From positions 35,328 to 99,327 of the forward strand of contig NIVC01001285.1 of the NCBI GenBank assembly GCA_002269645.1: 64,000 bases of DNA. Reading direction: 5' to 3'. The notes beneath the pieces were generated by a model, which was not told where the DNA came from, made no database searches, and was given only the letters and a program-made list of their open reading frames with translations. This DNA is from Macrostomum lignano. Lineage: Eukaryota. Shown here piece by piece: positions 5,092 through 61,654 of this stretch (positions are counted from its first letter, which is position 1; every line of letters starts with the position of its first letter). Both the position numbers and the translations under genes were made by a program.

Positions 5092-6414
5092 AACATAACT
5101 GTTTATAAAACATGTGATTGGGCTTCTATATAGCAATGTCCAGTTTGCAAATCAAAAGGAAAAAAATTATCGTTCGCCGGATCCTCTTCATCGTTAAGGC
5201 TCTGTAAACTTGCTAGAAAAGTTTTAGTTTTTTAATTCAAAGTGGAGAAGCTTTCGAAAGAAAATAGTTTATTTTATCTACGAAAAAAGTTAATCATTTT
5301 AACAATTAAAAAACTCGTCGCTATTCTAAGACTAAGCTAAAAATCAGTCTATAACACTAGATAAGATATGCTTTGTAAAAGTATAGGAATATTATAAATA
5401 GGCAATAAAATACAATAAAACATTGAATGAAAATTATTTTAGACGACAATAAAGACAATAACGAATTAGAAAATAGAATTTTGAGTTCAAATTTAAGAGG
5501 CAAATATTCATTTTTATCGATTTAAACAAGGTTTCGATACATGAGTTAAAAATATGCATTTCAAATAGATTTTAAAGATACGATTGGGACAATCAACGCA
5601 AAAATAGAATTATAGATTTCATAGATATTATAGATTTCAGATTTAATAAAAACTTTAAATTCGACTTCATGCCGAATAGCATAAAACCGATCCATTTTAA
5701 GCATATACATTTAAGTTTTGCGAACGTCATTTTGTCAATGCTGGGTGTAAAATATCGCTGAAAAAATATTAAATTTTTCTTCTTTCAAAATCACTCAAAA
5801 TCCAAAGATCTCCACTTCACAGATGTTGATTGCATTGTCCAGCAAGCTGATGATTCCGAATTTGCTGCCGAAGGCGTTGCATTGGAAGGTGGCCACAGAA
5901 AATTTATGTCTGTCCACTCGGTAGCACTCAGTGCCGTCCACCTGCAGGGACAGCTTATCCAGTCGGGCAGTGCAGCAGTCCTGCCGGTTGTAGATGGTGA
6001 CATGCGAGACGAGGGCGGGTCGGGACTGCTGGCCCTCCCACCAGCCTACCTCACCGCCAATCGTGTGGGTGCAGGATTTATAATAGTAGTCCTGGTTCGT
6101 ATCGCCATCGATTGCTCTTTCGCAAACTCCTCCCTCATGGACCGAGCTCTGGTTGCAGCTGATGAAGCTCAGCTTCACTGCGTCTAGAATGCAAAGTATA
6201 CAGCATAACTGCAAGATAAGCACTGAAAGAACTACATATTTGTGCATCATGCTCTTAAACTCACCATTCTTAACGGTGTAAACATCGCAGACATCCGAGT
6301 TGACTTACTTGACTTGACTTAGCTGCAGGGCGGTCCGAAGACGCAGCGGGGAGGCGAGCGTCGCCCATTCCGCTAATCCCTGAAAGACCCGCATAGGCTA
6401 GGGCGCGGGGCCGG

Positions 6415-9400
6415 TCAGGGAGGTCTGCCGGTCCTGTCTGCAGCGTTGTCTTCGGTGGGGAAGACGGAGGCTCGCTTGGTGGCCCGAAGGAACCGGATGA
6501 GCCGTGGGATGTTCTCGGGCCGGCAAACGTCGTCCAGGGACGGGTTGGGTCCGAGGTGGTTGAGCCGGTCTCGGTTGAAGGTCGGGCAGTAGCAGACGAA
6601 GTGCTTAGCGTCTTCGTTCTCGAGGTTGCAGAAAGGGCAGAGTTCGCTCCGGCGGGCACTTTGGAGGAAGCAGTGCCTGGCAAAGCAACCGTGACTTGTG
6701 AAGGTCATAGTGAGAGCGCGGATATCTTTTCGATTTTGGTTCAAAAGGATTCTCCGCAGCTTGAGGGACGGATTGGGCACTGCCGCACGAGATTGGCGGC
6801 AGTTGGAGATACCATCCCATCTGCGCAAGTGCAGAATGTCCGCCCAGTCGTTAATCTGACGATTAATGACTGTGGCGGGGATGGGGGCCAGGGGCACGGG
6901 GCCAAGGGGCGAGCCGGAACAGCCCGCCTTAGCGAGGGAGTCGGCCAGCTCGTTACCTTTGAAGCCGGCGTGTCCTGGGATCCACGTAAGCCGGACGGTG
7001 TTCCTCCGAGCCAGCTTGTTGAGCTGCCAGATACAGTCGCGGACTGTTCGGGAGTTCGTAGTGGTGTGACACAGGGCCTGCAAAGCGGCCTGGCTGTCAG
7101 AGTGGAAGAATATTCTTCTGTCCTTGAAGTCCCTGCAGTGGAGCTCAGCTGCACAGGAGCTGATGGCAAGGACTTCATTCTGGAAGACGCTGGAGAGTCT
7201 GCCAGTGTGTTGGGCGTGAGTAGCAATTACGCGGCCGTTGATAAGGATGCAAACTCCAAAGCCGGATAAACCGTCTTTGGAGGATCCGTCAGTAAAGCAG
7301 TGAACCTCCTGAGGGGCCCAGCTGTCGTTGGCGTTCTCCCTGGAGGGGATAGTGACCTTGAAGCGTTGGTAGAGACTGAGGGAGCGCGGCTCAGCGTCCG
7401 AAAGGACAGCCGCACTCCCACTCTCCTCCAGAACTTTAAGGCACAGGTCAGAGTGCGGCAGAAGCTTGCGCTTCGCCATCGCTCTTTGAGGCTTGAAGCT
7501 GACGCCAGCCTCGATGAGCCGGCGGGTGGTTTTAGCGGCCTCGCGATGGACAAAGATGTCCAGAGGCGGGAGGCAAAGAAAGGCGTTGAGGCCGTCAAAG
7601 GGAGCAGAGAGCGGGGCATTCAGGATCATGCGGCACGCACGTCCCTGCACCCTTTTGAGGGCTTCGTGGCAGGTTTTGATCTGCAAGGCGCTGGTCCAGA
7701 CCAGGCCGGCGTAAGTAACGGCCGGTCGGACCATTGCGGTATAGATCCACCAGAGCCGCTTCGGGGTGAGGCCCCAGGTGGTGCCGACGGCTCTGCGCAG
7801 CTGCGCAAGAATCGCGAGGGCTTTTTTGGTTTTGGCCTGAACATGGGTGGACCAGCTCAGCCGGTGGTCCAGCGTAACGCCGAGACACTTGGTTTGCTTG
7901 CAGGATGGAATTTCCACCCCGTAAAGCTTTAGTGGGCGAATACGCCAGTTTACCCTGCTGGTGAACATGATCGCGACAGTTTTGGTCTCAGAGAGCCTGA
8001 GGCCGCACCTGTCCGCCCAACGTTCAGCAGAGCGAATGAAGTTTTGCAGAAGATCCCTAAGGGTTTCAGGTGACGGTCCGGATGCCACGGCTGTGACATC
8101 ATCGGCGTAACCGACCTTGAGGATGGGGTCAAGATGGCTGTCCTGGAGGAGCTCATCAATGACCATGTTCCAGAGAACTGGAGAGAGGACACCGCCCTGG
8201 GGGCTGCCTTTGCAGACGGTTACCGTCCGATGGTGGCCCAGCAGGTGTGCGGTGGCAGTACGTGGCTGATCATATACATGATCCACCGGGTGAGGTGCGA
8301 GTGGGTTCCTCTAGCACGTAGAGCTCTGTCAAAAGCCTCAAAGAGGACATTATCAAAGGCTCCAACAATGTCGAGGAAGACAGCGAGTGCGTAGCCATTA
8401 CCAAGAACGGCTTTCTCCAGCATGTCAACCAAAACGTGAAGCGCGCTCTCCGTGGACCTGCCTGCCCGAAAGGCGTGCTGGTTCTCACTGAGCGGCTTGT
8501 TTTTCAGTTCCACAGAGAGGAGGCGCCAGAGCACCAGTCTCTCTAATAGCTTCACCAGTGAGGAGGTGAGGCTAATTGGTCTGAAGGATTTAATGGACCG
8601 GTAGTCCGGTCGGCCGGGCTTGGGGATAAAAACCACCTTGGCCTCGGTCCAGGGTTTCGGAACAAAGCCGATAACAATGCAAGCTTTCAGAAGCCGGCAA
8701 AGGTTCCGCAGCAAACCGGTGCATTTCACCGCCTCCCGCAGGAAGGCTGGCACAACGCCGTCCGGTCCTGGGGATTTGAAGGGTTTGAAGGAGGAGACTG
8801 CTTTAGTAACTCGGTCCTCCGTGATGATTGAGTCGGCCAGTACGTGTCCGCCCACTGAGTGATCAGGGGGGTCGGGCCTGGCTGGCTCGTTCGGGAATAA
8901 CGCTGTCAGCATCGCTTCCAGTGTTTCTCCTGGGTTCTCAGTTAGCGAGCCGTCGGCTTTTTTGACTGAGGAGAGTTTGGAAATTTTGTCCAGGGTGAGG
9001 GCTTTAACGATTCTAGAGGTGGGGCGGGAGCCCTCAAGTTCCTCACAGTATTCGCGCCACTTGTTGGGTTTGGCGTTCCTAACCTGCCTCTTGAACTCGT
9101 GGATAGAGTTCAGGTAGGCGGTTTGGTCGGCCGGGTTTTTAGTTTTTTGGGCCCTACGGTGAAACCTTTTGGCTCTGCGACGGAGGTCGCCAAGCTGCGG
9201 GTTCCACCATGGGGCCGACTGTTTGCCTTTATATGCCTTTAGCGGGCATGAGGCTTTGAAGGCAGCAGTTAGCGAGTCCGTAAGTGCGGCCGCAAATTCA
9301 TCTGCTTCCTCGCAGGTGTTGATGGAGACTGGAGTGCTAGTGCAACGATAGGTCTCCTCCAGGGCAAGCCTGAAGGCGGTCCAGTCGGTATTCCTAGCAT

Positions 9401-10405
9401 TCCGTTTCCAGTAAAGCTGGCCTGCGTTTCGGGCGCCGGCCAGCGTGAAAGAGATGAACTTGTGATCGGAGAGGGACGCCTCAGGAAGCACCCGCCACTC
9501 CCTAGTGCTCTGGAAGAGCCTGGGCGTGGCGAGGGTGGCATCCAGCACCTCCGATCGGCGTCCGTTATTGAAGGTAGGGGTACTACCCGAGTTACAGAAC
9601 TCAAGGGTTGTAGTAGCAATATAAGCCAGGAAGTCTTCACCTCTCTGGTTTATATCAGAACTGCCCCAGTGGGTGTGGTGGGCATTGATATCGCCTGCCA
9701 CAAGCAGCTCATAGTTTCTGGTGGAGCAGAGCTCGACCAGTGTGACAAGCTCTACTGGGATCATCTCGCCGTCGCCCGGTAGGTAAACCGAGGCGATGAG
9801 GGTAGTCCTCCCAGGGAGTATGTCTTCAGATTGGATGACGCAGATGTCCCTGGTGGACAGGTCCGATCTGAGCCATGCGTTAATAGAACTGGACACCATG
9901 ATGCAGGATCTTTGACTTACTTTGACTTAGCTGCAGGGCTGTCCCGGAGGGGACACAGCGGGAAGGCGCGGGCGCCCATTCCGCTAGTCCCTGAACGGCC
10001 GACGCGTCGCTATGGACGGAGGGTTGGCGCCGCCCAGGGAGGTCCCCCAGTGTCGCCAGCAGCTATAATAGTGCTCTCTGGAAAGGAGAGTTCAGCCCTG
10101 CGGGTGGCCCGAAGGTAGCGCATGAGCTGATTAAAGTTTTCGGGTTTGCACGCTTCAGTAATAGAGTAATATGTAATATTCAGTAATATGCAGGATCTTG
10201 GTGCCAGGTTTCCCTCCCGGGTACCAGCGGTTAAACACTGGTAGCCGGTGGGGACATGTTGGGGACTGCCCCTTAGCGTCCAAGGTTCCTGGATAAGGAT
10301 AATCCCTGGCGTGTATTGGTCAGTGTGCTTCAAGAGGTTGACTGAAGCACCAATGCTGTGCTGCAGGTTGACCTGCAAGCAGTGGATGCCCTGGGAGACA
10401 GTCAT
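6415..10405 (-). pseudogene. Family 1 ORF2 (APE endonuclease-RT-RNase H-CCHC), interrupted
   Basis: Motifs LQVNLQH, ILIQEPW, GDINAHH, LSDH, KSPGPDG, PQGGVLSP, GYADD, FTDGS, WIPGHAGFKGNELAD and CPFC...HFVCYC. Broken by the nested insertion at 9913-10187 and by a 1 bp deletion near 8262 (MISH/RTATAHLL). Confidence 0.9.
9913..10187 (-). mobile_element. 5'-truncated 3' fragment of LINE family 2 nested in the family 1 endonuclease domain
   Basis: 12 bp TSD ATGCAGGATCTT at 9901-9912 and 10188-10199; removing the insert restores LAPRSCIMVSSS. 9913-10165 is near-identical to 14367-14612 apart from the tail and a 3 bp indel. 22 extra junction bases occupy 10166-10187. Confidence 0.95.
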
Positions 10406-10407
10406 GT

Positions 10408-11183
10408 CTACTGTCCAGGGGAGGAGAAAAGCAACTCATTCTCAGCCTCATCGGTGAGAGTTGAGTCGCTAATTTCCATTGGCTCAGGCTCAGCCGCCTC
10501 CCCAGCCGCCGCAGAGGCGGACACGGCGCCCACAGCAGATGAGTCACCTAGCCGCGCTACACCGCCCTCCTCCCCAGCGACTGGGGTACGGCTGCTGCCT
10601 TCGCCTTGCGCCCCGCCGTCGGGAGTCTGAGCTCGGCCGGCAGCGTCCTCCTGATGGTAATCCCACCAGTTGGAAGGCTGAGCCATGCCGTCGTTCAGTT
10701 CCCTCGGCTGGCTTTCAGTGCTTTTGCGAGCGGCACGAGTCTGCTCGAGGTGAAGTCTCAGAGACTGAGCTTCGTCAAGTGCGCGCTGGATTAGCCCGGA
10801 CCGCCGGTTACTGCGGGCGGGTCTACGTCCGCGCGAGGCGGACTCAGCAGCGCGAATAGCCTTGTTAGGCTCAGGATCAGGTTGCTGCTGCCGCTTGGCC
10901 GGCGGGGCCTGAGCCCCAGCTCCGGGAGCGGCGCGCTTCCCGTCTTTCTTGGTCTCCACCTTGCCCTCCTCACAGCGGAGGATGGTCAGTTGATGGAGAC
11001 CAAGGTGGAGGTTTGTGCCGTGCGGTAGCCGCTTGGCCCATCCCTCCGTCAGGCCGAGGATGACGGTGGCCCCGGTCGTGCCCTTGCGGACCGTGCTGTG
11101 GTACACAAGACCACTGGCGTCGAGATCCGGGTGCCGCTTGAGCAGGAGCTGCCGCAGCTGCTCCCCGGACTTGATCGCGCTTG
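10408..11183 (-). CDS. Family 1 ORF1, C-terminal part
   Basis: LLKRHPDLDASGLVYHSTVRKGTTGATVILGL is homologous to family 2 ORF1 LLRLNPDLPASGLVYHRKVRRGETGNSIVLGL. It stops 2 nt before the ORF2 ATG (TAG AC ATG). Confidence 0.8.
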
Positions 11184-11540
11184 AGACATCTTGAGACATC
11201 ACTTGAGACATCCGAGTTCCCCCAGGCGTCATTGTGGAAAGCATTGAAGTTGAAAAATCTGCACAGACCCTGCATCAGCCAGCTGAAGCCATAGCAGTCA
11301 GATTTCAGACTGCACAGCTCGGCGCATTTCAGCCTGCCGATACCAGTCAGAGTCTCCATGGCAACCGGAGCTGAGACGCTCCTCATTTTGGCAATGGAGA
11401 ACATGACTCGAGCTGTCGCTGGTCCAACAATAAGAGCTACACAGAGCAGCATAATAAGGGGATAATTGCTATGCATGTTTGAATTTTTATTCAGCTATCT
11501 TTCCAACAAAAGCAACCTTTTCAAAAAGTCTCAGCTCCTG

Positions 11541-11611
11541 TTTTTATAGTTACGGATGAGTTTTTGTCCAATTTTTTGCATGCGGTTTGCTGATTGGCCG
11601 AATCTGATTGG
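11541..11611 (-). promoter_or_regulatory. Putative promoter of lectin gene A (two CCAAT boxes and a TATA box)
   Basis: The minus strand reads gtCCAATcag attcggCCAATcag (11611-11591), then TATAAAA (11548-11542), about 65 bp upstream of the ATG at 11476. Confidence 0.5.
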
Positions 11612-12588
11612 ACAATGACAAAAGCACTAAATTTAGTTTTTATTGTTTTATTATCAACAGGTTTTGGTTCGTAGCTTACTTAGGTAGTCGTTGTATCTTA
11701 AGTTTTCCACCGATTACCTTGATAAATTAACTTTTAGGTAATGATAAGACAAACCCTATATTCCACTGACTCTTGAGCATGCTCATAAATACACGGATGC
11801 GTACAAGTTGCATTAGGTGCTCATGATCAGACTTTTCTAACGTCTGGAAGTACACTATGAAACTTCTGGAAGTCCTGACTCCTATAGGTCGCGATTCTTA
11901 CAACAAGCCCAAAGCTAATTTTCATACATGATTCCCGAATTAAAATGTGGCCGTGCGTACGTAATCGAACCCGAAATCGATGCCGCTGTATTGATGCATA
12001 CTATATCAGTTTTTTGCGCAAACACAGCAATAAACAATCGTTTTCAGAGAATTTACATCTATATTTATTCTTTTTTATCAGATTTCGTTGATTTAAAAAA
12101 TGACGAACGAGTATTGCACTTGACCGAGTTCCAGTCAGCCACGGTCACGAAATTGTTGATGTTTGCTTGTAATTTCTGCGAAATTTGTCTAACTTTAATT
12201 GAAAATTGTGCGTAACCAAAACGTGACTAGAATGAATAAAAATGGAGTTACATAGGTCGTATGCACTGTAAAAATTAAAAAAAATATGCACCAATGATAA
12301 ACATAATTACAACGAAGAACCCCCAATATATAATGTGTACTTATCATAATTATACTTGTAATTGAATTCTGGAACACACTGCCACTATAAATGTATTTTT
12401 CAGCAGAACAGTGTCGATATCTTTAGTTTAAACGCAACTGGAACTCGGCAATCATAGCCAGCATATTTAACAAATTATACAAGTTTTTCGCGCTGTGTTC
12501 TACACTTTCTACTTATCAGTAGACGATCATAACAGTCATTACCATATACATGCATCTAAGGACCGTGTTTTGAGGATAAAACTAAAAT

Positions 12589-12648
12589 ACGCGCAGAAAT
12601 GGCACTGGTCGCTCCTGTGAATGCCCTGCAGCTAAGTCCGGTAAGTCA
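12589..12648 (+). mobile_element. Short 3'-end remnant of a third related LINE (or a SINE sharing the tail)
   Basis: GCCCTGCAGCTAAGTC (12623-12638) is identical to the terminus of both LINE families and is followed by cggTAAGTCA. Upstream, cgcag-aaat-ggc-actg-gtc-gctc-ctgtg can form the same nested stem-loop. Confidence 0.5.
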
Positions 12649-13811
12649 CGCCTCTCACCCAACCTATCAGATACTGAGACTGCCGGTGGCCAGGGAATCC
12701 TGAGACCGCATACGCCAAGCTCGTCGTAGATGAAGGATAACCAACTCTTAATAGAATTCTAGCAGTCGATGCCGAGGATGATGTCCTCCAACTTGGTGTT
12801 GCAACCTGGGCGGAAGAGCTGAATAGGGGACACAGAATCTCCAGGCCAGTCTTCTCGTAGAAGACAGCTGAGTTCGGCCCAAACTCGAGGTTGCTTTCTG
12901 AGCAGGAAAAATCGGCGGTTAAATTAAGAACCAACAGGCCCGTGATTTGTTCTAGCGGAGCACATCGGTTTCGATTGACTGAGCTTGTTACTAGCTAGAC
13001 CTGAGAAGCTCAGATATCCTTATCAGGCCCCGGAGAAGTTTCAGTAATGTCATGTCGAAAACAACATAAAAATATATATTAGATCGGGAATACAGAGGAG
13101 ATTGCAATGGAATAATCTGCCGGAATATCAAGATTGAGACAAATATACTTTCCAGGGGAAAAATTCGCAGCTGTCAAAAATGTCGTCACACTAGGAATAA
13201 ATTCGAACTCATACATGTAGGCCGAAATTTCATGTGATTGATGGCCTGTCAAAATGAGAAAAAAGTGCCTGTCACGTGATTCTCCCAGACCATCTGGCGT
13301 CAGTAGACCTGAAGTCCCGCATGCCAAACAGTTGACACCTGTTGCTTTCGACCCGGAAAAGTATGCTGAAATAGAATCCTAACACAAAATGAAGGATAAG
13401 AAGAGAATGTGAGATAGAGGGAAGGAAAGAATAGATTAGATATGAGAAGTAGTGTTACTGGCAGTAGTAAATACATAAGTCAGTGCTGAAAGACTCTCCT
13501 CAGCTGTATTTTTATTAAGAAAATAGAAAAGCTAAAGTTTTCCTGAAGACTATGCAAATTTATTTAGCTGATAAGTCATTATTCAATTCAAAATCTGCAG
13601 TTGTGTCTGATCAGTTTTTCGGATTTGGCTTCATAATTAACCGGAACAAATCCGGGAAAACGAAAATTTTAATCAAATAGAAGTTACAAAAAGTGAATTT
13701 CCTGTGACTTTTAGCCTCAAATGGCTGAATGACGTTTTTTAACAAAACGTTTCTAAGAAGGATCGATAACGACAAAAATCAGCCATAGAAAATACAGAAA
13801 GAGAGCGCAAC

Positions 13812-13955
13812 CAGGGGTGTCGCCATAGATTTTATGGTAGGGGGGGGAGAAAACCAAAATTCTTCTACATGACTAAATTCCTAAAAATTATTTTGGGTAT
13901 TTATGTTGTTAGCACTCATTTTGGCCCCGCAGGCACTCATTCATGCGCGCTAGTA
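13812..13955 (-). mobile_element. Second, diverged copy of the 4762-5091 dispersed repeat
   Basis: Its reverse complement aligns by eye with 4862-5091 (aatgagtgc, gaatttNgtcatgta, aaaatcYatggcgacRcccc). Confidence 0.45.
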
Positions 13956-14459
13956 TCATGCCTTCCCCTGGTTGTGCAGCTCCCTGGGCCGTCCCGGGGG
14001 ATAGGACAGGTAAATTAAGAATTATATTATTCTAAAAGTTGCTTTTATTTTTGCTTGCACTAGCATCAACTACATTTTCCAGGTGACACAATTGAATTGC
14101 ATGTAAATCCATCCCTCAACAAACTAGTTCTAACCAATGAACAAACCCGGAAAACACGCAGCCAATCCAATGGGTTAAACAAACCAAAAAAGTATTTGAA
14201 AAGCGGTGCCTCAATGTATCAGAAATTTGCTCTACTGCCGCGGCTACTGCTCAGCTCACGAAATAACTGTCAAAAAATGCACAAGCGCGTTTTAAACCTG
14301 CTGTCCTGTGCCATCCTGCTTTGGCTTTGCAGGCCAACAACGGCGAAAACTGTGTTCACGGCAAGCTTGACTTGACTTAGCTGCAGGGCTGTCCCGGAGG
14401 GGACACAGCGGGAAGGCGCGGGCGCCCATTCCGCTAGTCCCTGAACGGCCGACGCGTCG

Positions 14460-17400
14460 CTATGGACGGAGGGTTGGCGCCGCCCAGGGAGGTCCCCCAG
14501 TGTCGCCAGCAGCTATGGTGCTCTCTGGAAAGGAGAGTTCAGCCCTGCGGGTGGCCCGAAGGTAGCGCATGAGCTGATTAAAGTTTTCGGGTTTGCACGC
14601 TTCAGTAATAGATGTGTGTGGCCCGAGGTAAGTGAGTCTGGCCCGCGTGAAGGCGGGACAGATGCTGACGAAATGCTCAGCGGTTTCGTCACCTGAGTTG
14701 CAGAAACTACAGGTGGCGTTGGTGGCGTTGCCCTGCAGGTACTGGTGCCTGGAGAAGCAGCCGTGACCAGAGAGGGTCATGGTGGCAGCCCGGATGTCTC
14801 TGCGCGAGAGGCGCAAGAGGAGCTTCCGGAGCTGGTGAGAGGGCTGAGGGACAGCGCCTCTGGATTGCCTGCAGTTCGTGCGGTTCGCCCAAGTCGAGCG
14901 GTGCTGAGTCCTGATCCACGCTTTGATGCGCGAGTCGATGACACAGCCAGGAATCGGGACAAGAGGTTCGGGGCCGAGAGAGGAGCCGGAGGCACCAACT
15001 TTTGCAAGGGTGTCAGCCAACTCATTTCCTCGGATCCCCACATGCCCCGGAACCCACTTAAGGGTAATTTTGTTGGCGGAACCCAACACATTGAGGAGTT
15101 TGATACAGTCAAGGACTGTAGCAGAGTTGGTGCTGCAGCCACTGATGGCGTGCAAGGCAGCTTGGCTGTCCGAATGGAAAATGATGTTCTTACCAGTAAC
15201 GCCAGTGGCGAGAAGCTCTGCAGTGCAGGAGCTGATGGCCAGAACTTCATTTTGGAAAACACTGGAGTTGACCCCAGTGTATTGAGCGTGGGTAGCGATG
15301 GCCCTCCCGTTCAGAAAGATTCCAACACCAAAGCCGGTGTTGGCTGACTGCTTAGAACCGTCGGTGTAGCAATGAAGCTCACCAGGGTTCCAATGGTCAT
15401 TGATGTTATCGCGCGAGTCGATAGCTACGGAGTAGCGCTGTCTCAGGTTGAGCGTTGAGGCAATGCCATCGGTGAAGACGCGATTGGCCTGACACTCGTT
15501 GAGAAAGTTGAGGCACAGATCGCTATGCGGGACAAGGTTCCGCTTAGCAGGTGCTCTCATGTAAATGAATTTGACGCCGGCATCAATTAGACGCCGCGTC
15601 GTTCTAGCCGCCTCACCCCTGATGAAGAGGTCAAGAGGCGGAAGATTAAGAAAGGCCCCCATGCCAGCAAAGGGCGTGGACCTGGTGGCGTTGCAGATGA
15701 GCCTACACGCTCTGCCTTGGATCGTGTTGAGCAGGTCTGCATGGCTTTTGACCTGGGTAGCGCTAACCCAGACAACAGAGGCGTACGTAATGGCAGGTCT
15801 AACTACGGAAGTATAGATCCACCAAAGCCGCTTTGGGGATAGACCCCAAGAAGTGCCAAGTGCTCGTCGGAGCTGGGCCAGGATGGCTGAGGCACGCTTA
15901 GCTTTTGCTTTCACGTGGAAGGACCAGTTGAGCCGGTGGTCAAGTGTGACCCCGAGACATCTGGTCTGGTGCGCGAAGGCAATATCTCTGCCGTAGAGCT
16001 GCAGAGGACGTATGTTCCAGCGTAGTCTGCTGGTAAACATAATGGCAACGGTTTTGGGCTCAGAGAGTTCCAAACCATTGTCATTGGCCCAGGATTCTGC
16101 TTTGCGGATAAAGCTCTGCATCAGATCCCTGAGCGTGCTGGGAGACGGTCCTGCCACAATGGCCGTGACGTCATCAGCATACCCGACTTTGAAGACGGGG
16201 TCAGGTCGGGAGTCACTCAGAAGAGCGTCCATGACCAGGTTCCAGAGCGTCGGGGTGAGGACTCCGCCTTGGGGTCCACCCTTACAGACTCTGGTGGAGG
16301 CAGTTTGCCCAAGAAGTTGGGCAGTGACCGTACGGTTGGAGATCATGTACATGATCCACTGTATGAGGGTAGCATGAGCTTTGCGATTTTGAAGGGCCCT
16401 CTGAAACGCTTCAAAGATAACGTTGTCGAAGGCGCCAACAATGTCAAGAAAGAGAGCCAGGGCGTAACCGTCACCCAGTACCGCCCGTTCAATCTTTTCG
16501 ACAATCGCATGCAGGGCGCTGTCAGTCGACCTCCCGGTACGGAAGGCGTGCTGATTATTGCTGAGGGGCATCGCTGTCAGCTCGCAGGAGAGCAGCCGCC
16601 AGAGAATAAGCCTCTCAGTGAGCTTAAGCATTGCTGACGTTAAGCTAATTGGCCGGAAGGCCTTGACGCTTTGGTAGTCACCCTTCCCAGGTTTGGGAAT
16701 AAAGACTACTCGAGCTTCAGTCCAGCTTTTGGGAACGTATCCCAGCTGGATAGAGGCCCGCATAAGATTGCGGGTGAGTCTCAGGAACGAGGGTATCTTG
16801 GCTGCTTCACGAAGGAGAACAGGGTAGATACCATCAGGTCCAGGAGATTTGAAGGGTTTGAAGGTTCTGACCGCACGAGCGATTAGGTCTTCAGTGACAA
16901 TGCCCGCCGCTAGGGTGGCTCCATCCATCGAATGGTTGGGCTCCGGTCTAGCAGTAGGTACCCTCGGGAAGAATGTGCTAAGCATATGCTGAAGCACTTC
17001 TTCAGGGTCTTTAGTAAGAGAGCCATCATCTTTTTTTATCATGGCTAATTTGGACATTTTGTCCATTGTAAGGGCCTTGACAAGCCTAGAAGTAGGTCTG
17101 TCTTGATCCAATTCATTGCAGAATTGGCGCCACTTACATTCCTTGGCCTTGCGCACTTCAGATTTGAAATTGCGGGAGGCTTGCCGGAAAAGCTCCATGT
17201 CCTCCGGGTTTCCGGTCTTCATGGCACGGCGATGAAGGCTTTTGGCCTTCCGCCTGAGTTTCCCCAGCTCCGGGTTCCACCACGGCGCCGAGGTCTTGCC
17301 TCTGTAGGCGCGAGCAGGACAAGCCGCTTCGTAGGCTGCAATAATGCAACCTGTCAGCGTCTCAGCCATATGATCCACATCCTCGCAGGTCTCAATCGGA

Positions 17401-18200
17401 CGTAAGTCCGTGAGTTCCTGCAGGTGCAGATCAAGGGCAGCCTTGTAGGCCGCCCAATCAGTGTTGCGGATATTGCGTCTCCAAGTGATCGGAGACTGGG
17501 TTTTAGTGTCCGCGATATTAAAGGCGATAAAGCAGTGGTCAGACAGGGAGGGCTCCTCAGACCAGACTCTCCACTCCTTGACTCTGTCAAAGAGTCTTGG
17601 GGTGACGAGTGTGGCGTCGAGGACCTCGGTCCATCTGCCATTATTAAAGGTAGGAGTGCTGCCGCGGTTGCAGAGCATGAGGTTTGTGTTAGAGATGAGG
17701 GCCAGAAGCTCCTCTCCTCTAGTGTTGGTATCTTTGCTGCCCCAGTGCTTGTGGTGCGCGTTGAGGTCGCCCCCTAAGCACAGCTCAGCGTTCTGGGACT
17801 CGCAGTACTGCGCAAGGCGCAGTAAACTCTCGGGAGCAGGGTCTCTGTCGCCTGGGATATAAACCGAGGCAACAAGACACGTACGCGGAGAGAAATGATT
17901 AGATTGGATGACGCAAAGGTCTCCATCAGAGAGATCAGTCCTCAGCCAAGCCTGGAGATGGCTAGCAGCGAGGATAGCCGCTCTAGGGCGGCTGTTCCCC
18001 GGGCCACACACATAAAAATCAGAGTAGCCAGAGGGAATGTTGGGCAACTTACCGTTGCGCATCCAGGGTTCCTGGATCAGGATGAGGCCTGGCCTGTACA
18101 GCTCAGCAATCTTCATCAGATTTACTGACGCAGATACGCAATGCTGTAAATTTATTTGCAGACAGAATGTCGCTCCTTTGGCAGCGTGGAGCTTAGTCAT
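14460..18200 (-). CDS. Family 2 ORF2, intact 1246 aa APE-RT-RNase H-CCHC polyprotein
   Basis: Motifs LQINLQH, LIQEPW, GDLNAHH, LSDH, KSPGPDG, PQGGVLTP, GYADD, YTDGS, WVPGHVGIRGNELAD and CSFC...ETAEHFVSIC. No stop or frameshift. Confidence 0.95.
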   Translation of the reverse strand: MTKLHAAKGATFCLQINLQHCVSASVNLMKIAELYRPGLILIQEPWMRNGKLPNIPSGYSDFYVCGPGNSRPRAAILAASHLQAWLRTDLSDGDLCVIQSNHFSPRTCLVASVYIPGDRDPAPESLLRLAQYCESQNAELCLGGDLNAHHKHWGSKDTNTRGEELLALISNTNLMLCNRGSTPTFNNGRWTEVLDATLVTPRLFDRVKEWRVWSEEPSLSDHCFIAFNIADTKTQSPITWRRNIRNTDWAAYKAALDLHLQELTDLRPIETCEDVDHMAETLTGCIIAAYEAACPARAYRGKTSAPWWNPELGKLRRKAKSLHRRAMKTGNPEDMELFRQASRNFKSEVRKAKECKWRQFCNELDQDRPTSRLVKALTMDKMSKLAMIKKDDGSLTKDPEEVLQHMLSTFFPRVPTARPEPNHSMDGATLAAGIVTEDLIARAVRTFKPFKSPGPDGIYPVLLREAAKIPSFLRLTRNLMRASIQLGYVPKSWTEARVVFIPKPGKGDYQSVKAFRPISLTSAMLKLTERLILWRLLSCELTAMPLSNNQHAFRTGRSTDSALHAIVEKIERAVLGDGYALALFLDIVGAFDNVIFEAFQRALQNRKAHATLIQWIMYMISNRTVTAQLLGQTASTRVCKGGPQGGVLTPTLWNLVMDALLSDSRPDPVFKVGYADDVTAIVAGPSPSTLRDLMQSFIRKAESWANDNGLELSEPKTVAIMFTSRLRWNIRPLQLYGRDIAFAHQTRCLGVTLDHRLNWSFHVKAKAKRASAILAQLRRALGTSWGLSPKRLWWIYTSVVRPAITYASVVWVSATQVKSHADLLNTIQGRACRLICNATRSTPFAGMGAFLNLPPLDLFIRGEAARTTRRLIDAGVKFIYMRAPAKRNLVPHSDLCLNFLNECQANRVFTDGIASTLNLRQRYSVAIDSRDNINDHWNPGELHCYTDGSKQSANTGFGVGIFLNGRAIATHAQYTGVNSSVFQNEVLAISSCTAELLATGVTGKNIIFHSDSQAALHAISGCSTNSATVLDCIKLLNVLGSANKITLKWVPGHVGIRGNELADTLAKVGASGSSLGPEPLVPIPGCVIDSRIKAWIRTQHRSTWANRTNCRQSRGAVPQPSHQLRKLLLRLSRRDIRAATMTLSGHGCFSRHQYLQGNATNATCSFCNSGDETAEHFVSICPAFTRARLTYLGPHTSITEACKPENFNQLMRYLRATRRAELSFPESTIAAGDTGGPPWAAPTLRP

Positions 18201-18239
18201 ACTGTATTAAATGCAATATCTGGCTAGAGCCCAGGGCCA

Positions 18240-19743
18240 TCAAGGAGACTTGGACAACAGATCGTCCTCGTCCCAGGCCGCTGGGGCTTGACTGGGAGAT
18301 GGGAGTTGGTCGACGTCCATGGCCTCCTCACCCCCACCGGCCCCCCAGCAGAGTCCTCAGGCTCCGATGACAGGATGGAGGAAGCTTCCTCACCTGCATC
18401 TTTACCTTCAGACCCCACCAAGGTGGCCGAGGAGAGCTCGGATTCCGAAGACCCGGCCTCGTCCTCAACTCCTTCTCCGACTGGCAGGTTTGGTTCCCGG
18501 GGCTCGGCCGGAGCCGTTACCGCGGTCGCCGAACTGCTGCTAGCAGAGGGGCGAGATGCAGCTTTGGCTTTGGGATCGGCTTGCGCCTTTCCTTGGGCCT
18601 TAGACTGCGCCCCGCTCTTGCCGGAGATGCCGGGGTTGGCAGTAGCCTTCCCTTTGGCAGACTTTCCTCGGCGCAACTTGAGCTTGAGGGCACCCAGCTG
18701 GAAAGAGGATCCATTAGGGTACCGACTCGCCCAAGTGCTGGAAAGGCCGAGGACAATTGAGTTGCCCGTCTCCCCCCTGCGGACTTTGCGGTGATACACC
18801 AGTCCACTAGCAGGGAGGTCGGGGTTCAGACGCAGTAGGACCCGGCGAATAACGTCTGGTCCAGCTGCGGTGCTCTTAGCAGGGACGAAAACCACATAGG
18901 GTATCGTCTTTGGACGCTGGCCCTCGCGAAGAAAAAGAGCTCCACCAAGGTCAGCATCCAAGGAGACCGTCGGTAGCCGCTGGAGCAGCCGCCGAGCGTC
19001 CTCCTCGCTGCTAGGAGCAATAAGAACGAATGTGCTTCGCAGCACCATCCGCTCAACGCCGATGGAGATTCCCTCCTCGACAGTCAGCTCAATCAGATAG
19101 GAGTCAACAGCACTCCACACTTTTTGAAGCTGATCAGTGGTCCAGTCCTGGTCGCGACCTTGGATGATCACTCCCGGGATTTTGGCCTTGGCCTTCGCCG
19201 CAAAGGTAGCTCCCGAAGGAACCTCCTTGTTGGCAGTGGCCATTTGTTGCGCCGTGGTTTCGGCCTCAGCAGCCGCGGCAGCAGCTCCAGGGAGCGCCGC
19301 CGCTGAACTACTGGAGCTTCCACCGGCCGGCCCGCCTGGTTGCCTTGGGACTCCAGTCGCTTCAGCATCCATGGTGGACGCCGCCGCTTTGGCCCCCGCA
19401 GCTCCCTTCTTGGCCTGCCTTTTGGCGCGTTGTTTAGCGCGTTTGCGCTCAAGCCGAGCCCGCTGAGCTTCATCGGATCTGCCAGATTTGGCCGGTCCTT
19501 TAGGCTCAGAGCTCGCGGTTCCCTTAGATCCACCAGCGGAGCTGGCAGGTCTTAGGGTATTTTGAGTTTGGTAGCTCTGGTCGGATCTGCCAGCAGAGCC
19601 AGCCGGTCCTTCCTTGCCACAGTTGAATCAGTCGGTTGGGATCTGCCAGCAGGGCCGGCCGGTCCTTCGGACTGAGGTTGGGGTTTAGAAGGGTCCCCGT
19701 CCCTAGAAATAGCTTGTTTATCCATAGTCGGCTCGAAGGCCAT
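18240..19743 (-). CDS. Family 2 ORF1 (DUF4780/RRM-like nucleic-acid chaperone, no CCHC knuckle) with two apparent 1 bp frameshifts
   Basis: ATG 19743 (MAFEPTMDKQ...GPAGPAGRSQ) is out of frame with the sister repeats GPAGSAGRSD/GPAKSGRSD downstream of ~19625. Adding one G to the G6 run at 18341-18346 gives the C-terminus GEEAMDVD...DEDDLLSKSP*, which matches family 1 EPMEI...ENELLFSSP. The DUF4780 likeness is from motif memory only. Confidence 0.75.
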
Positions 19744-22494
19744 GATAAAAGGTTGGTGGGCTACCCTCAAAGGGGCGCGGTACCCACCCGGCCGCTCCAC
19801 CTGACCGGGCAGTAGGCCAATAGCACCCTCAAGGCTGGCCCGACACCAGGAGGGGGACCGCTTGCGACCGGACTACTCCCCGGCCTTCCAGCCCATCGGC
19901 ACGGTCAACACCTTAGGCATTAGAGAGTACGTTGAGCAGTACCACGGCCTGCAGGTTGGCGAGCCAGACCCGCATACCCAAATTCGGCCGAAGCCACTGG
20001 ATAGGGTCGCCAGCGCCGGAGCCCAGTCTGTCCAGCAGCCCTAGGGACTGCCTTGAACACACGCGGGGACGAGTACCCTGGGTCGACTTGCGAGACAGCG
20101 TGGGGGGGGGGTCTGCGGCTGCCAGAGGCAAATAGAGGGTGCAGACCTCCCACCAGCCTTGACCTGCTGAAGATAGGGGCAGGCGTGAAGCATCGCAGAC
20201 CTTAGCCCATGGGCCTAGTCTGTCTCATACTTCACTGGCATGCTGAATACGCCTTCGCGTGCTTCACGGCAAGCAAATTGCGTAGCATTTCAACCCCTAT
20301 TGCCATAGTCTCTGCTTCCGGCATCGGCAGATTGAACTGCGCCGAAGACTGCTCCACAAGATCGGGCTGCTTCGGCTTCACCTGGTTGCCGGGTCTCTGC
20401 CGATTGTTCAGTCTGTCGGCCTTCTATAATTTAGCCTGGGAGAGCTCAGCTGAATGCGACGTTTACACGTTGAATACGAGTAAGTACAGACTTAAAGTCT
20501 TAATAGACTTAAAGATAGGAAGTACAAACATGCCTGACATGGGCCACGTGTACGTGGAAACCAAGTTCACAACGACTGTGAGCAGCCTGCAGAGTGCTGT
20601 GGGTGATTCACAGAATATTTGGCCATGCACTCACTTAACAGCATTTAGGGCGGCTGAGGCATTCGCTCCCGCTGTGTACGAGTACTAACCTCATCCAACT
20701 CAGAGTAATCATCTGTGTACAATCTTGGTTAATAATTTCAACTTTCAAATTTCAGCTAAACTAAATTTCGTCGCCTGCAACCAGAGCTCGGTGATGCAAA
20801 ACGGAGTCTGCGAGAGAGCATTCGACGGGAATAAGAACCAAGACTACTGGGGCGGACTGAGCTGCATTCACACTGACAATAATGGCCAGCCAGGCTGGTG
20901 GGAGGCTCAACTCGCCGCGCCTGCTCAGATCTCGCATGTCACCATCTACAACAGGGCGGACTGCTGCAGCTCCCGACTGAACAAGATGTCACTAACTGTG
21001 GACGGTGTTGAGTGTCATCGGGTTGACCTGACGGTGGCTTTCTCAATTGCCACTTTCAGCTGCAACGCTTTTGGCAGCAAGTTTGCTATGATTAATTTGC
21101 AAGCTTTTTCGATTACGATGTGCGAAGTTGAGATCTACAGCCTCTAATTAAACAGAACTGAATGACTACTGGTCAGTAGCCGTGAAGAAGGGCTGCACTA
21201 ACCAAACAAAATTAATATACGACACGTAAAACAAATACTTCATGTCTCTCGTGGTCAATATTTATTTATTTATCAATTGGTATACATCGAATGTAGAAGT
21301 ACTTGTTATGCAATCAATTTTCAAGTGCCCTTTTATAAGACAACAGACGATTTTTTTTCTTTTTTTCAATTTCAGTAGCTTCTTCTTTAATACAGATATA
21401 TGATTCTGTAATTTCCTGATCCTGTTCAATTTTTCCGGAATACTCGTATTTATCCCCTAGTGCCATCTTTAGTTGCTGCAACATTGACGTTGTTGACAGC
21501 GCGCGCTTGGCATCAACGTTGACATAAAAATGTTGCTGAATTGTTGCAGGAACATTGATATAGAAAAAGATTTCAAATGTGTGAATTTCTGGCAATTGAA
21601 TTATTGCAACTCGTTTAGATTCGGGAGCTCCTTAAATTAAAATTGTACGGAGTTATTCATTTATGTAATTCTAATTCAGAAGAATCTGTTTCTTTAATGT
21701 ATACGTAAAGATTTGTTAAATGTAGCTGCTACAGTTTTTACTAACCAACTTGATTTAATTTCTACCGTCAGGCACATCGACACGGATTTCTAGCTGCAAA
21801 AAAAATCGTTGCTATTTAGGCCTACTGTTTACCTAACTTTCTATTTGACTTTTTGTTTAGCTTTTTATTTGGTTTATTGCATGTTTGCTTAGCTTTAAAG
21901 TTGGCATAAGTCGAAGGCCTAGAATACAAAAACGTAACTAAAATTAATTAGATAAAAATCTGTTGTTGCAAAGCTCTTCCTACTACACTAGCCCTTGAAT
22001 TTAAACTTAAAGAACATAAAAATATTATTGCCTAGGCCTTAGCCTGGCTACTATATTAAGTTGGGAATGCCAGTTTTTTTGTTTGCTCCTGGGATTACAA
22101 CCATAGCTTTTTTTGCTTACTTGATTGTAACTTGCAAAACTACCCAAGAGATAGACAAAGATCAAGTTGAACCTGAAGTTGCAAATAATCAGGACCAGGC
22201 CCTTAGTGGTCTAGCATCTAATATTGTATTTTTGTCTGGGCCATCTGCTTCTGCACCTACTCTAAGTGAAGACACAGTTGTTGTAGGTAAATAATAATGC
22301 AATGAAACTCTGTTTCTAATATATATTTTTTATGCTTATCTAATATATAAAGTATTTTGATTATGTTATGCTTAGCCTTATTTAGGCCAAACATTTGTTA
22401 GTATAGGCCTAATACTTAAGGTTAGTTAGTATAATATGTTGCTAGGCCCTATAATATAAATATAATACAAACTCATGTTGTTGGTATAAATATG

Positions 22495-24053: not shown

Positions 24054-26390
24054 ATTTTTCCTCAACATCTGTTCATGGAGCCAGTAAGCGAACAGTCCAA
24101 CGACATATTAAGAGAAGCTACGAGGAAGCTGCAGTTATGCTGCATTGCCCATGTCACACTGAAGATCCAAGTCAACAGCCAACTGAGCCTATGGCAGAGC
24201 TTGGAATTCATGCTGCTCCTGAGCCCACAGAAGAGTCTCAAATGGAACTTGAATACCAGGAGATGACTAGTGATGATGTTGGTAAGATTGAATGTATCTA
24301 TTTTTTATAATAACCCCTAATTGCTTTCAACACTTTTTATTGACATCTTAGTGTGCTTGATCCTCTAAACTGAATATGAACCTTACACCATCCATTATTC
24401 ATTTCTGCTTTACAAATAAATTAACTTAAATTTTTTCTGTAACTTTGAAAGTTAAACAAAAATTTAGAGTAAAAATGTGATTTTATCAACAAGTATGTGC
24501 ATAATCTTTTTAATAGTTTTTGATAATACTCTAGCTATTTATTTCTTACATTTAGGAAACCTGACTTCTTCAACGATTGAATCAGCCCTTCATTCTGATG
24601 ACAACCAATGTGCGAGACTCGAGGCCATGCTTCGAGACTGGGTTAAAGCAACAGGCCCAGAAGTGCCGTGCGTGAACTACTTGCTTCAGAATCTACAAGA
24701 CGAGTTTCCTGGTCTAGCTGCTGACTATCGTGGACTAATGACTACACCAAGGGAGCTTACTTTTCGCTATGTCAACCCAGGGCGATATTATCATTTTGGC
24801 GTTAAAGCTGGTCTTGACTTTCTCCTGAGCAATATTGGATCACGCTCTCGTCTGGATTCCTTGAACCTCCACCTTTTTGTTGATGGTGCAAAAGTGCACA
24901 ATAGCACTACCTATACATTGTGGCCTGTGTTGGGTAGAGTTTCGAATTTGTCTCATTCTGTTTTTATAATCGGGCTTTACTATGGAACTGGCAAACCCCT
25001 CTCTGCTTCGGACTTTCTTGCCGACTGTATTACTGAATTGCGTGATTTGATGGCTGATGGATTTGTCTCTACTGTCACTTCAGAGTCAGATCTCATATTA
25101 CCTTTTAAACTTTCAATGATTACCTGCGATTCACCAGCACGCAGCTTTGTAAAAGGAACAAAAGCATGTTGGGGATACTTTGGTTGCGACAAGTGCACTG
25201 TTGAAGGGGACTTTTGTAATGGAAGAGTGACATTTTCTGACCTAAGTGCTGCACTACGAACTGACTTTGGCTTCAGAGGTGATGTATACCCAAATCATGT
25301 TCTTCTACCAAGCCCTTTTTTAAGTTTGCCCATCGACATGGTTCATGATTTTCCTCTGGATCCAATGCACTTAATATACGAGGGTATTGTTCCTAAATGT
25401 TTAAAATTCCTCGGTAAGGGACGCTTGCCCCATCGAGCATCTGGACCTAATATTCGTCAGATAAGTGCTGATCTGTGTTCTATTTCGTCTTGCATTCCGC
25501 ATGATTTTGCACGAAAGCCACGGTCGATTGAGTGCGTGGGTCTTTGGAAGGCAACTGAGTTTAGATTGTTTATTTTGTACTTGGCGCCAATTGTTTTAGC
25601 TGGAAACGTCCCTGAATCTGTGTATCAATTATTTCTTTCTCTGCATTCGTTTGTTTTCCTATTGTCGCATCCTTTGGTTTGTCAAACGTACTGCTCTTAT
25701 GCCGAAGATTTGGCAAAGCACATTGTTAATGAATGTGCAATTATTTGGGGTGACGAGTTTATCGTGTACACTGTGCATTCAATAATTCATATTCCTTCAG
25801 AAGTTCGTCGACGTGGTCCGTTGGATAGTTTTAGTTGCTTTTGGGGCGAAAATTTTATCCGCTTTATTACCCAGTTTGTTCGCAGTCCACGTTTTGCTCT
25901 CGAGCAGACTGTGAAGCGAATTCTGGAGAGAGATGTGACTCTCGGTTTTTTTCCTAAGCACATGTGTTCTATTCAGTCGCCTTTTGAATATTCCGGTCCA
26001 ATTGCATCTTCGAATGTAGACTTCTCATTGCAAGGAGTTCAGACATTTGGTATTTACCGTAAAGTTAGTCTTGTATTGCGTGGAACGTATATATCTGTTG
26101 CTAATCCAGACTGCTATATTTTAACTCGAGATGGATTTGCAGTTGTAGTCACTCATATAATTTCTACTGATGTCGGTTGTATTTTCGTTGGCAAGAAATT
26201 TATTCAGCAAACCGCCCTCTACGACGAAACTTTCGACTCAATGTCTCTGCACATTTCCGTTGTCAATACTTTAAGCAACTCACTCGTAACTGTACGATGG
26301 ACTGATTTCTATGGTAAAGCGATGCTTGTAAGTCTCAAAAATCGTTCCTGCATTCTCCCTATTTTACATACATTGGTCGACTGTGCGTAG
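24054..26390 (+). CDS. EnSpm/CMC-type DDE transposase
   Basis: Exon 24054-24281 (ASKRTVQRHIKR) joins in phase 1 to exon 24556-26390. Motifs LFVDGA, WPVLG, GLYYGTGKP, ITCDSPARSFVKG, GYFGCDKC, FPLDPMHL, FRLFILY, HGPLD-like RGPLDSFSCFWGENF. The start exon was not located. Confidence 0.9.
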
Positions 26391-40300: not shown

Positions 40301-41069
40301 AAACAAGATCGGCGGCTGATTCTGACTGAATCTTCAGAGAAACTCCGTGATTTTCCAGCAAAGCCAATATATCAGTCCAGCTGTTTTTGCTAGCTTCGAA
40401 GCAGCAAGCTTTATAAAAGTTTCTTTTCTCTTCCAGATTGGTTGCATCAAGTGGATTCCACTTTTCCATTAACATTTTGAGTACTTTAATTCGACCGTTG
40501 GCCAACGCAACGTCGAACGCTGTGTATCCTTTGTTGTTGCGGGCCGTATAGTCCGCCGAATGGTTTAGAAGCGGCACTACCAAAGCGTGAAAGCCTGATT
40601 GAGCCGCGCACATCAAAGGCGTGTTTCCTGCAGCATCGGTGGCGTTCACGTTAATAGAGGGAACGGACAGCAATGTCTGAGTAGTGCTAACGTGCCCACC
40701 GAGAGTAGTCAAGTGCAACGGTGTGAGCTTGCTAGATTCGTGCTCACAGTTAGGGTCTGCGTCGTTATGCAGCAGTTTTGAAACCAATGGCCATTTGCCA
40801 AGTGCGGATGCGAGCAATAGCACTTGATTTTTTACGTTCCCGCGTTCGTGGTCAGGCAGCTGCTGAAGGTGATGCAGCTGCTCCATCACTGGTTCAGCAC
40901 CTTCAAGCCATTTTTCGCAATGCTTAACGGCGTCCTTGAACTGCTGGATCGGAGCCTCGATGCGCGGCAACACGTATGGCGACTCTTGGGCGATGCTTTT
41001 GAATTTTGTCTCCATTTTTGCGCAGACCGCTCCTTGTAATAGTTTGTGATTAAAAACGGTTTTGTGCAT
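34370..41069 (-). CDS. Giant ankyrin-repeat + pseudokinase protein (about 2150 aa if repaired), two exons, frameshifted by an 80 bp duplication
   Basis: Exon 41069-35623 holds a helical N-terminus and dozens of TPL/GH ankyrin repeats. A phase-2 intron 35622-35387 (AG|GTAAAT ... TTTTCATAG|G) joins it in frame to R-CGKIHE...LRGTFGRA...WLVKK. The kinase fold has HGSLTLKS in place of HRD, KGF in place of DFG, and intact APE, SDIWSLG and DPSSR. Further 5' exons are possible. Confidence 0.85.
35159..35319. repeat. Perfect 80 bp tandem duplication in the kinase N-lobe
   Basis: aactcaggca recurs at 35161 and 35241 with no mismatches. 80 is not divisible by 3, so the spliced frame ends at ...AKVTGW*. 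Confidence 0.95.
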
Positions 41070-50068: not shown

Positions 50069-50377
50069 TGCTGGCGCCCCTGGTGCTGGCGCCCCTGGTG
50101 CTGGCGCCCCTGGTGCTGGCGCCCCTGGTGCTGGCGCCCCTGGTGCTGGCGCCCCTGGTGCTGGCGCCCCTGGTGCTGGCGCCCCTGGTGCTGGCGCCCC
50201 TGGTGCTGGTGCCCCTGGTGCTGGCGCCCCTGGTGCTGGCGCCCCTGGTGCTGGCGCCCCTGGTGCTGGCGCCCCTGGTGCTGGCGCCCCTGGTGCTGGC
50301 GCCCCTGGTGCTGGCGCCCCTGGTGCTGGCGCCCCTGGTGCTGGCGCCCCTGGTGCTGGCGCCCCTGGTGCTGGCGC
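50069..50377. repeat. 15 bp GC-rich minisatellite (tgctggcgcccctgg), about 20 copies
   Basis: Near-perfect array with a single c>t variant near 50209; AT-rich flanks. Confidence 0.95.
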
Positions 50378-61545: not shown

Positions 61546-61654
61546 TAGCTAGTGCAAATGTTACTTCCGCTAATGCAATAATCGCTTTCTCAGGTTGTGC
61601 AACAATCCAAGTCTCAGCGAGCGCAATAATCTCTTTTTTAGACAGCGCAGTAAT

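Follow-up and report, generated by a model that had tools for sequence, protein, structure and literature searches.

Two related LINE families split both genes of a divergent F-type lectin pair in the flatworm Macrostomum lignano

Background

Long interspersed nuclear elements (LINEs) that bear an RNase H domain fall into the I, Tad1, LOA, Nimb and similar clades, with the Drosophila I factor as an example, and the disruption of a coding exon by a LINE is known from human L1, copies of which have inserted into exon 14 of the gene for factor VIII. Here we describe a locus in the flatworm Macrostomum lignano at which two neighbouring genes of the F-type lectin family, which we call A and B, are each split in exon 1 by a LINE, namely, LINE1 in gene A and LINE2 in gene B. 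The window, that is, the whole stretch that was analysed, is 64,000 nt of M. lignano DNA from contig NIVC01001285.1 (forward strand, 35,328-99,327), and positions are given in window numbering.

Like the I-, Tad-, LOA- and Nimb-type LINEs, the LINE1/LINE2 group has two open reading frames (ORFs), of which ORF2 carries an AP-type endonuclease (APE), a reverse transcriptase (RT), an RNase H domain and a C-terminal Cys/His motif, and as in the I factor the 3' end is a short simple repeat instead of poly(A). It differs from the I-type elements in that ORF1 has no zinc knuckles detectable with Pfam and the tail unit is AAGTC, and the likeness is one of domain content. The insertions resemble those of L1 in factor VIII in being target-primed insertions into coding exons with target-site duplications (TSDs), the frequent 5' truncation, microhomology at a 5' junction and loss of the reading frame. 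They are unlike them in that the elements have an RNase H domain and a pentanucleotide-repeat tail rather than poly(A), and in that two adjacent paralogues were struck by two LINE families, in a flatworm.

The solved F-type lectins FBP32 (Protein Data Bank, PDB, entry 3cqo), AAA (1k12) and the Streptococcus fucolectin-related protein (2j22) are matched over the whole lectin domain by the family of A and B, and the fucose-binding residues and the DG-containing calcium motif of these lectins are likewise kept in A and B. Unlike the solved lectins, A and B have a single lectin domain that is fused to an N-terminal PAN/Apple-like domain, and sugar binding by them is a prediction. In other animals F-type lectins function in immunity and in gamete recognition (PMC5712786), and a literature search found no paper linking Macrostomum with F-type lectins. 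M. lignano is neopolyploid, and its genome comprises three paralogous copies with an identity of ~98% at the <1 kb scale, which differ mainly by indels (PMC10733133). Large insertions that separate highly similar copies, as in these indel-rich paralogous copies, are the general background for the locus described here; that study covers neither the A/B locus nor these LINE families.

Results and discussion

Genes A and B are each split in exon 1 by a separate LINE

Two G+C-rich blocks (54-60% G+C) stand out between 5.8 and 21.2 kb within DNA of 38-44% G+C, and they hold long minus-strand ORFs with APE, RT and RNase H domains. The blocks are flanked by two pairs of short ORFs with a within-pair identity of 48% for the first pair and 60% for the second, and a repeat search of the whole window gave an inverted match between the two lectin exons amid the dominating satellite signal. 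Gene models were reconstituted by excising each insert along with one copy of its TSD, the junctions being read directly in the sequence. In these models gene A, on the minus strand, starts with the ATG at 11476 and gene B, on the plus strand, with the ATG at 14277, so that transcription is divergent. Both genes have two exons, with an exon 1 of 295 nt in each, and both have a phase 1 GT..AG intron followed by an open exon 2 (Table 1). The predicted products are 227 amino acids (A) and 228 amino acids (B) long, the reconstituted frames hold no further stop codon or frameshift, and the part of exon 1 of A that lies 5' of LINE1 aligns with exon 1 of B at 48% amino acid identity. The initial annotation of this DNA had described a head-to-head pair with a 2.8 kb spacer and a common exon structure, in which each gene is split in exon 1 by its own related LINE and carries no other lesion, and all of this was reproduced: the frames are open, the splice sites are intact and the residues that are invariant in the family are kept.

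LINE1 is in the sense orientation relative to gene A and lies at about codon 90. It is flanked by a 13-bp direct repeat, AACTCGGATGTCT, at 11206-11218 and 6289-6301. Its 5' junction shows GATGTCTCAAG stuttered three times (stuttered region 11180-11213) and overlapping a 7-nt microhomology with the target, and since the last 7 bp of the direct repeat overlap this microhomology the true TSD is 6-13 bp. The element begins within ORF1, is ~1.3 kb shorter at the 5' end than LINE2 and ends in an (AAGTC)n-like tail. Its ORF2 (APE, RT, RNase H) has one frameshift near 8262, across which the APE and RT domains are split, and carries a nested insert; the RNase H domain is matched by the Pfam RNase_H model with E 3.5e-13. 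LINE1 would have arrived already truncated at its 5' end and would have joined the target at the 7-nt microhomology.

LINE2 is antisense to gene B and lies at about codon 30, directly past the signal peptide, between two copies of a 12-bp TSD, TTCACGGCAAGC, at 14355-14366 and 20263-20274. Its Pfam matches are Exo_endo_phos_2 (E 8e-21), RVT_1 (E 1e-27) and RNase_H (E 1e-10), and its 5' end can be aligned with that of L002, an independent relative that is likewise full length. It is most readily seen as a young full-length insertion with open reading frames, and as such it is a candidate active element. Exact-protein look-ups in other assemblies for LINE2 ORF2, for the exon-2 ORF of gene A and for the paralogue P0001 returned no record.

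Without LINE1 the empty site predicted for gene A reads ...GGGGGAACTCGGATGTCTGCGATGTTT..., and without LINE2 that predicted for gene B reads ...CTGTGTTCACGGCAAGCAAATTGCG.... The two insertion points are non-homologous and the two orientations relative to the host gene are opposite, as the initial annotation had stated. Its description of the TSDs as perfect stands for the 12 bp of LINE2, whereas the 13-bp repeat of LINE1 has to be read with the microhomology in mind. LINE1 and LINE2 belong to related families and disrupted their genes in independent target-primed insertions. The genome of M. lignano is difficult to assemble and the minus strand carries all three of the large LINE pieces, which might point to an assembly artefact or to a transposon trap resembling a PIWI-interacting RNA (piRNA) cluster. 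Either is extremely improbable, because the junctions are clean and have direct repeats, because excision restores an open frame that is conserved in the family, unlike what a chimeric join would give, and because the transposon sequence comes to only 11 kb and three common orientations out of four are not significant. Misassembly was rejected specifically on the ground that excision of each insert restores the reading frame exactly.

Table 1. Positions of the genes, LINE copies and satellites in the window
Feature	Position	Strand	Description
Gene A exon 1, 5' part	11206-11476	-	ATG, signal peptide, PAN/Apple-like domain; includes upstream direct-repeat copy 11206-11218
LINE1	6302-11205	-	4,904 bp, non-LTR retrotransposon, 5'-truncated, sense to gene A
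Nested LINE2-family copy	9912-10187	-	276 bp, 5'-truncated, inside LINE1 endonuclease region
Gene A exon 1, 3' part	6265-6301	-	Downstream repeat copy 6289-6301 and remaining 24 nt 6265-6288
Gene A intron	6184-6264	-	81 bp; donor GTGAGT from 6264
Gene A exon 2	5795-6183	-	F-type lectin domain; stop codon 5795-5797
Spacer between divergent start codons	11477-14276	.	2,800 bp, ~40% G+C
Spacer LINE remnant	12609-12648	+	~40 bp of the group's 3' terminus; DNA match to 3' terminus
Gene B exon 1, 5' part	14277-14366	+	ATG, signal peptide; includes TSD copy 14355-14366
LINE2	14367-20262	-	5,896 bp, full-length non-LTR retrotransposon, antisense to gene B
LINE2 5' UTR			890 nt
LINE2 ORF1	18224-19372	-	382 aa, open
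LINE2 ORF2	14460-18200	-	1,246 aa, open; APE, RT, RNase H, C-terminal Cys/His motif
LINE2 3' UTR			93 nt, terminal AAGTCAAGTCAA
Gene B exon 1, 3' part	20263-20479	+	TSD copy 20263-20274, PAN/Apple-like domain
Gene B intron	20480-20755	+	276 bp; donor GTAAGT from 20480
Gene B exon 2	20756-21147	+	F-type lectin domain; stop codon at end
42-mer satellite	50869-52391		36 copies
23-mer satellite	55740-59415		160 copies
24-mer satellite	61668-64000		97 copies; continues past window end
LTR, long terminal repeat; UTR, untranslated region; aa, amino acids.

A nested copy and a remnant belong to the same LINE group

The initial annotation also reported a third insertion within the first and a fourth remnant in the spacer. 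The third is a LINE2-family copy made up of 244 bp at 98.4% identity to the 3' end of LINE2, a 5' stutter of ~22 bp and the tail, with ATTACT-type stuttered repeats at its 5' junction (10166-10187) and an 11-bp TSD, AGATCCTGCAT, at 10188-10198 and 9901-9911. This LINE2-family fragment would have inserted into LINE1 at a later time. The fourth is present but tiny: it has the exact 3'-terminal 15-mer CCCTGCAGCTAAGTC at 12624-12638 and the tail-like CGGTAAGTCA, and no recognisable TSD. In the window the 15-mer occurs four times, always between 6.3 and 14.4 kb, against 0.2 occurrences expected by chance, whereas the tail motif AAGTCAAGTC alone is uninformative (8 occurrences against 4.8 expected). 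Searches of the spacer at the protein level for a fourth LINE gave only noise. By tblastn and blastn the rest of the window has no further copy of these LINEs, as had been claimed.

The hallmarks of target-primed insertion are direct repeats of 13, 12 and 11 bp around the three resolvable copies and a 3' motif that is common to all four. One copy is full length, one is ~1.3 kb short, one has 244 bp and one ~40 bp, and comparison of the LINEs with themselves revealed neither LTRs nor inverted terminal repeats. Rfam and tRNA scans of the whole window were empty, the spacer included, in which there is no tRNA gene and no Rfam match; this speaks against a tRNA-derived short interspersed element with a LINE tail.

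Since the ORF2 proteins of LINE1 and LINE2 are 57-60% identical and their DNA is ~65% identical, the two are related yet distinct families of one group. L002, which was found in a public run assembly, represents a third full-length family whose 3' end is the same, and the closest database proteins to these LINEs are unnamed. The 3' UTRs of the three families (14367-14462, 6302-6417 and 9912-10010, all on the minus strand, and L002:5846-5968) have in common the invariant blocks TTAGCGGAATGGGCG and CCCTGCAGCTAAGTC and an (AAGTC)n-like tail, despite the ORF2 proteins of the three families being 57-62% identical. RNAalifold folds these 3' UTRs into nested hairpins with 23 pairs, with no covariation among what are only three independent sequences. 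The conservation of the 3' UTR suggests that the 3' end is specifically recognised by the RT.

The products of A and B are predicted secreted proteins with an F-type lectin domain

Judged from their sequences, A and B would be secreted proteins, each with a signal peptide, a probable PAN/Apple domain and one F-type lectin domain. The pair of exon-2 ORFs matches the F5/8-type-C and NedA-like models of Pfam. Against PDB, gene B matched striped bass FBP32 (3cqo, E 9.3e-23), the Streptococcus protein (2j22, E 4e-11) and eel agglutinin (1k12, E 1e-9), and a profile of the lectin family matched 3cqo with E 3.7e-36 and 1k12 with E 2.9e-16. In the AlphaFold model of the paralogue P0002 residues 101-229 are all-beta with confidence (pLDDT) values of ~72-94, mostly >=85.

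The fucose-binding motif of F-type lectins has been defined as HX24RXDX4(R/K) and the calcium motif as h2DGx (PMC5712786). The fucose-binding residues, His followed by Arg-x-Asp-x4-Arg, are present in A (CTHT...NRQDCCTAR) and in B (CIHT...NRADCCSSR). Counted on the PDB alignment the gap from His to Arg is 26 residues in FBP32, 26 in A and 27 in B, so that calling the motifs near-canonical, as was done in the initial annotation, is justified with one extra residue in B. The calcium motif is AIDGD in A and AFDGN in B, whose Phe exceeds in size the small hydrophobic residue that the definition asks for. In an alignment with 11 paralogues, A and B keep all the family-invariant cysteines and the lectin-core residues, and they keep both the His and the Arg motif of the fucose-binding site while several paralogues are without one or the other.

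Of the identity first given to these genes, PAN/F-lectin, the lectin half is thus well founded (3cqo, above), whereas the PAN half drew only sub-threshold Pfam matches. For A and B themselves there was no Pfam PAN match at E<=1. In the family PAN_1 was seen in 8 of 13 members and PAN_3 in 5, all below threshold, with a best E of 0.0011. On the other hand, the family profile has no non-lectin PDB matches other than the apple/PAN proteins MIC4 (4a5v, E 0.15) and MIC5 (1hky, E 0.19), four cysteines are invariant across the lectin family, and UniProt names several of the paralogues 'Apple domain-containing'. The PAN part of the P0002 AlphaFold model is of low confidence (pLDDT 44-71).

Consequences of the insertions for the two genes

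As it stands, gene A would encode only a 168-amino-acid PAN fragment that runs out of frame into LINE1. In gene B the ATG and the signal peptide would be separated from the remaining gene by the 5.9 kb of antisense LINE. Both genes have therefore probably lost their function. For gene B there is another way to read the sequence, which is that an antisense promoter of the LINE drives a lectin with a new hydrophobic N-terminus. The part of B that codes for the mature protein is untouched, and an ATG at 20209 in the antisense 5' end of LINE2 (20209-20262) adds 18 residues, MGLVCLILHWHAEYAFAC, before FTASKL..., the ORF 20209-20688 continuing in frame from LINE2 into exon 1 of B. However, the hydrophobic stretch has only ~7 residues and no charged n-region, which by inspection makes it a poor signal peptide, and the existing gene models begin further downstream. 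We consider it very unlikely that gene B is still active in this way.

The initial annotation had placed the pair around a shared bidirectional promoter. Bidirectional promoter pairs are taken to be those in which the divergent transcription start sites are less than ~1 kb apart and have one common promoter. Judged by the start codons, a classical promoter of this kind is not supported, because the ATGs are 2,800 bp apart and gene A has a TATAAAA of its own ~70 bp upstream of its ATG. A shared promoter is thus unlikely.

Family and genome context of the disruptions

The lectin family has at least 19 distinct paralogues in M. lignano, and all the database relatives of A and B that were found are M. 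lignano proteins. In the proteomes searched there is no annotated protein more than 60% identical to gene A, which is itself unannotated there, while exon 2 of gene B is 100% identical to the UniProt entries A0A1I8JJF4 and A0A1I8JJ59, which are models without the native N-terminus. At another locus of the family, L001 (20.6 kb, scaffold NIVC01001584.1 of assembly Mlig_3_7), the gene P0008 is intact and a 114-bp LINE remnant lies ~9 kb away. P0008 (L001:10001-10657) is intronless, that is, it is without the intron common to A and B.

Segments of the LINE2 family with 95-100% identity are found inside at least three unrelated UniProt gene models of M. lignano, one of which is an annexin, and the LINE2 family is therefore young and multicopy and inserts in or near genes elsewhere as well. 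In the models P0025, P0027, P0049, P0069 and P0127 pieces of the LINE group are fused with annexin, with leucine-rich repeats, and with lipocalin together with a piggyBac-like transposase. Such fusions of LINE and host domains are probably annotation chimeras that arose from LINE insertions in genes.

The most likely explanation is ordinary LINE activity under weak selection

With good confidence, we attribute the splitting of the gene pair to ordinary LINE activity together with weak purifying selection on dispensable members of the family. Recent activity of the LINE group combined with weak purifying selection would lead to both neighbours being struck, drift would readily fix such insertions in an inbred line, and a special integration mechanism would not be needed. 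Weak selection is favoured because the family has so many members, because the genome is neopolyploid with three copies and because the line is inbred; the reference line DV1 went through 24 generations of inbreeding and was maintained as a small population (PMC10733133).

Several points weigh against this explanation. All three primary insertions fall into 3.1 kb out of the 53 kb of pre-insertion DNA, for which a uniform model gives p ~0.01-0.02, and given three insertions the same model gives p ~2e-4 for both 295-nt exons being struck, and some local insertion bias may have played a part. These p values are post hoc, because the window was picked for looking odd in a genome with tens of thousands of genes; the clustering figures are an oddity and not proof of a mechanism. 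In addition, relaxed selection is something that we infer, and annotated A-like proteins or full-length B-like proteins, which would be expected if the other two genome copies had intact genes nearly identical to A and B, were not found. Since no intact near-identical copies of A or B were found annotated, the argument from redundancy rests on the wider family.

The same clustering is what had led to the proposal of an integration hotspot, in which the LINE endonuclease would prefer the locus because of open germline or stem-cell chromatin at divergent promoters, or because of local sequence or structure. LINEs make up 16.9% of the window, which is ~10 times the genome average, LINEs being 1.66% of the Mlig_3_7 assembly (Wudarski 2017, Suppl. 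Table 4), so that local density and genome average are not equal, and the 3' terminus, which occurs four times in the 64 kb, is confined to 8 kb, or ~3.1 kb of pre-insertion DNA. Apart from the post hoc nature of this statistic, a hotspot sits poorly with the nested insertion, which struck LINE1 and not host DNA, and with locus L001, where the lectin gene is intact and only the small remnant lies nearby. Moreover, the three resolvable target sites have no common motif beyond an overlap of 1-3 nt with the LINE tail repeat, and on this ground sequence-specific targeting was rejected. Since the target sites share no motif and the insertion points in A and B are non-homologous, sequence-directed targeting of the lectin family is unlikely. 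We therefore regard a hotspot as an unlikely, though conceivable, cause of the pattern.

It had further been proposed that loss of these lectins is tolerated or favoured. Of these, tolerance is the better supported half, given the at least 19 paralogues, the inbred DV1 line and the LINE2 pieces in gene models, and it is plausible that the loss is tolerated; for a favoured loss there is no support. If the loss were favoured, or if balancing selection maintained filled and empty alleles as presence/absence variation at a recognition locus, one would point out that A and B belong with those members whose fucose-binding motif is complete, that they therefore looked functional until recently, and that F-type lectins act in recognition in other animals, as mentioned above. 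But the sequence is most likely from an inbred line, in which fixation by drift is expected, and the literature search yielded no paper pairing Macrostomum with these lectins. It is hardly likely, then, that selection for loss or balancing selection has shaped the locus. Taken as one proposition, a true hotspot or a recognition locus at which transposon-made null alleles segregate under selection is improbable. The interpretation in the initial annotation is thus partly supported, and ordinary LINE activity under weak purifying selection remains the explanation that we prefer.

Other features of the window

Besides these LINEs, the repeats in the window are ~13 kb of satellites and, as a possible candidate, an ORF of 637 amino acids. 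The satellites are tandem repeats that occupy ~13 kb of 50069-64000 and have a strongly skewed, C/T-rich composition in 15-, 31- and 39-mers (the longest arrays are in Table 1); tandem repeats have been reported as 13-15% of the M. lignano genome, and the ~13 kb in the window is in line with that. The 637-amino-acid ORF (24477-26390, plus strand) lies 3.3 kb downstream of gene B and has no Pfam match; it could be an unclassified mobile-element gene. After it comes an ORF (27371-28327) that is built on a coding tandem repeat of 57 bp x 8.5.

A perfect 80-bp tandem duplication lies at 35159-35318, in the exon that opens the kinase domain of an ankyrin-repeat/kinase gene on the minus strand (ORFs 34370-35251 and 35619-41069). 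Its length is not a multiple of three and it causes a frameshift, and with one copy deleted the kinase ORF is ~50 codons longer upstream. Either the duplication is recent and shifts the frame, or the assembly is wrong at this point. Another pair of divergent paralogues, for DUF7802 membrane proteins, lies at 43865-44941 (minus strand) and 45864-47715 (plus strand), and neither of the two is split by these LINEs.

Conclusions

The locus adds a new case of a process that is well known, and it provides cleanly resolved young LINE insertions in M. lignano, which is a model for stem cells and regeneration. It has value for annotation because the existing models of gene B are all N-terminally truncated and gene A is absent from the proteomes searched. 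It also brings to light a previously undescribed PAN/F-type-lectin protein family of a flatworm. The finding would have greater import if targeted or selected inactivation of recognition genes were true: in that case the insertions would not be independent accidents, and there would be a recurrent, biologically driven switching-off of lectins in M. lignano.

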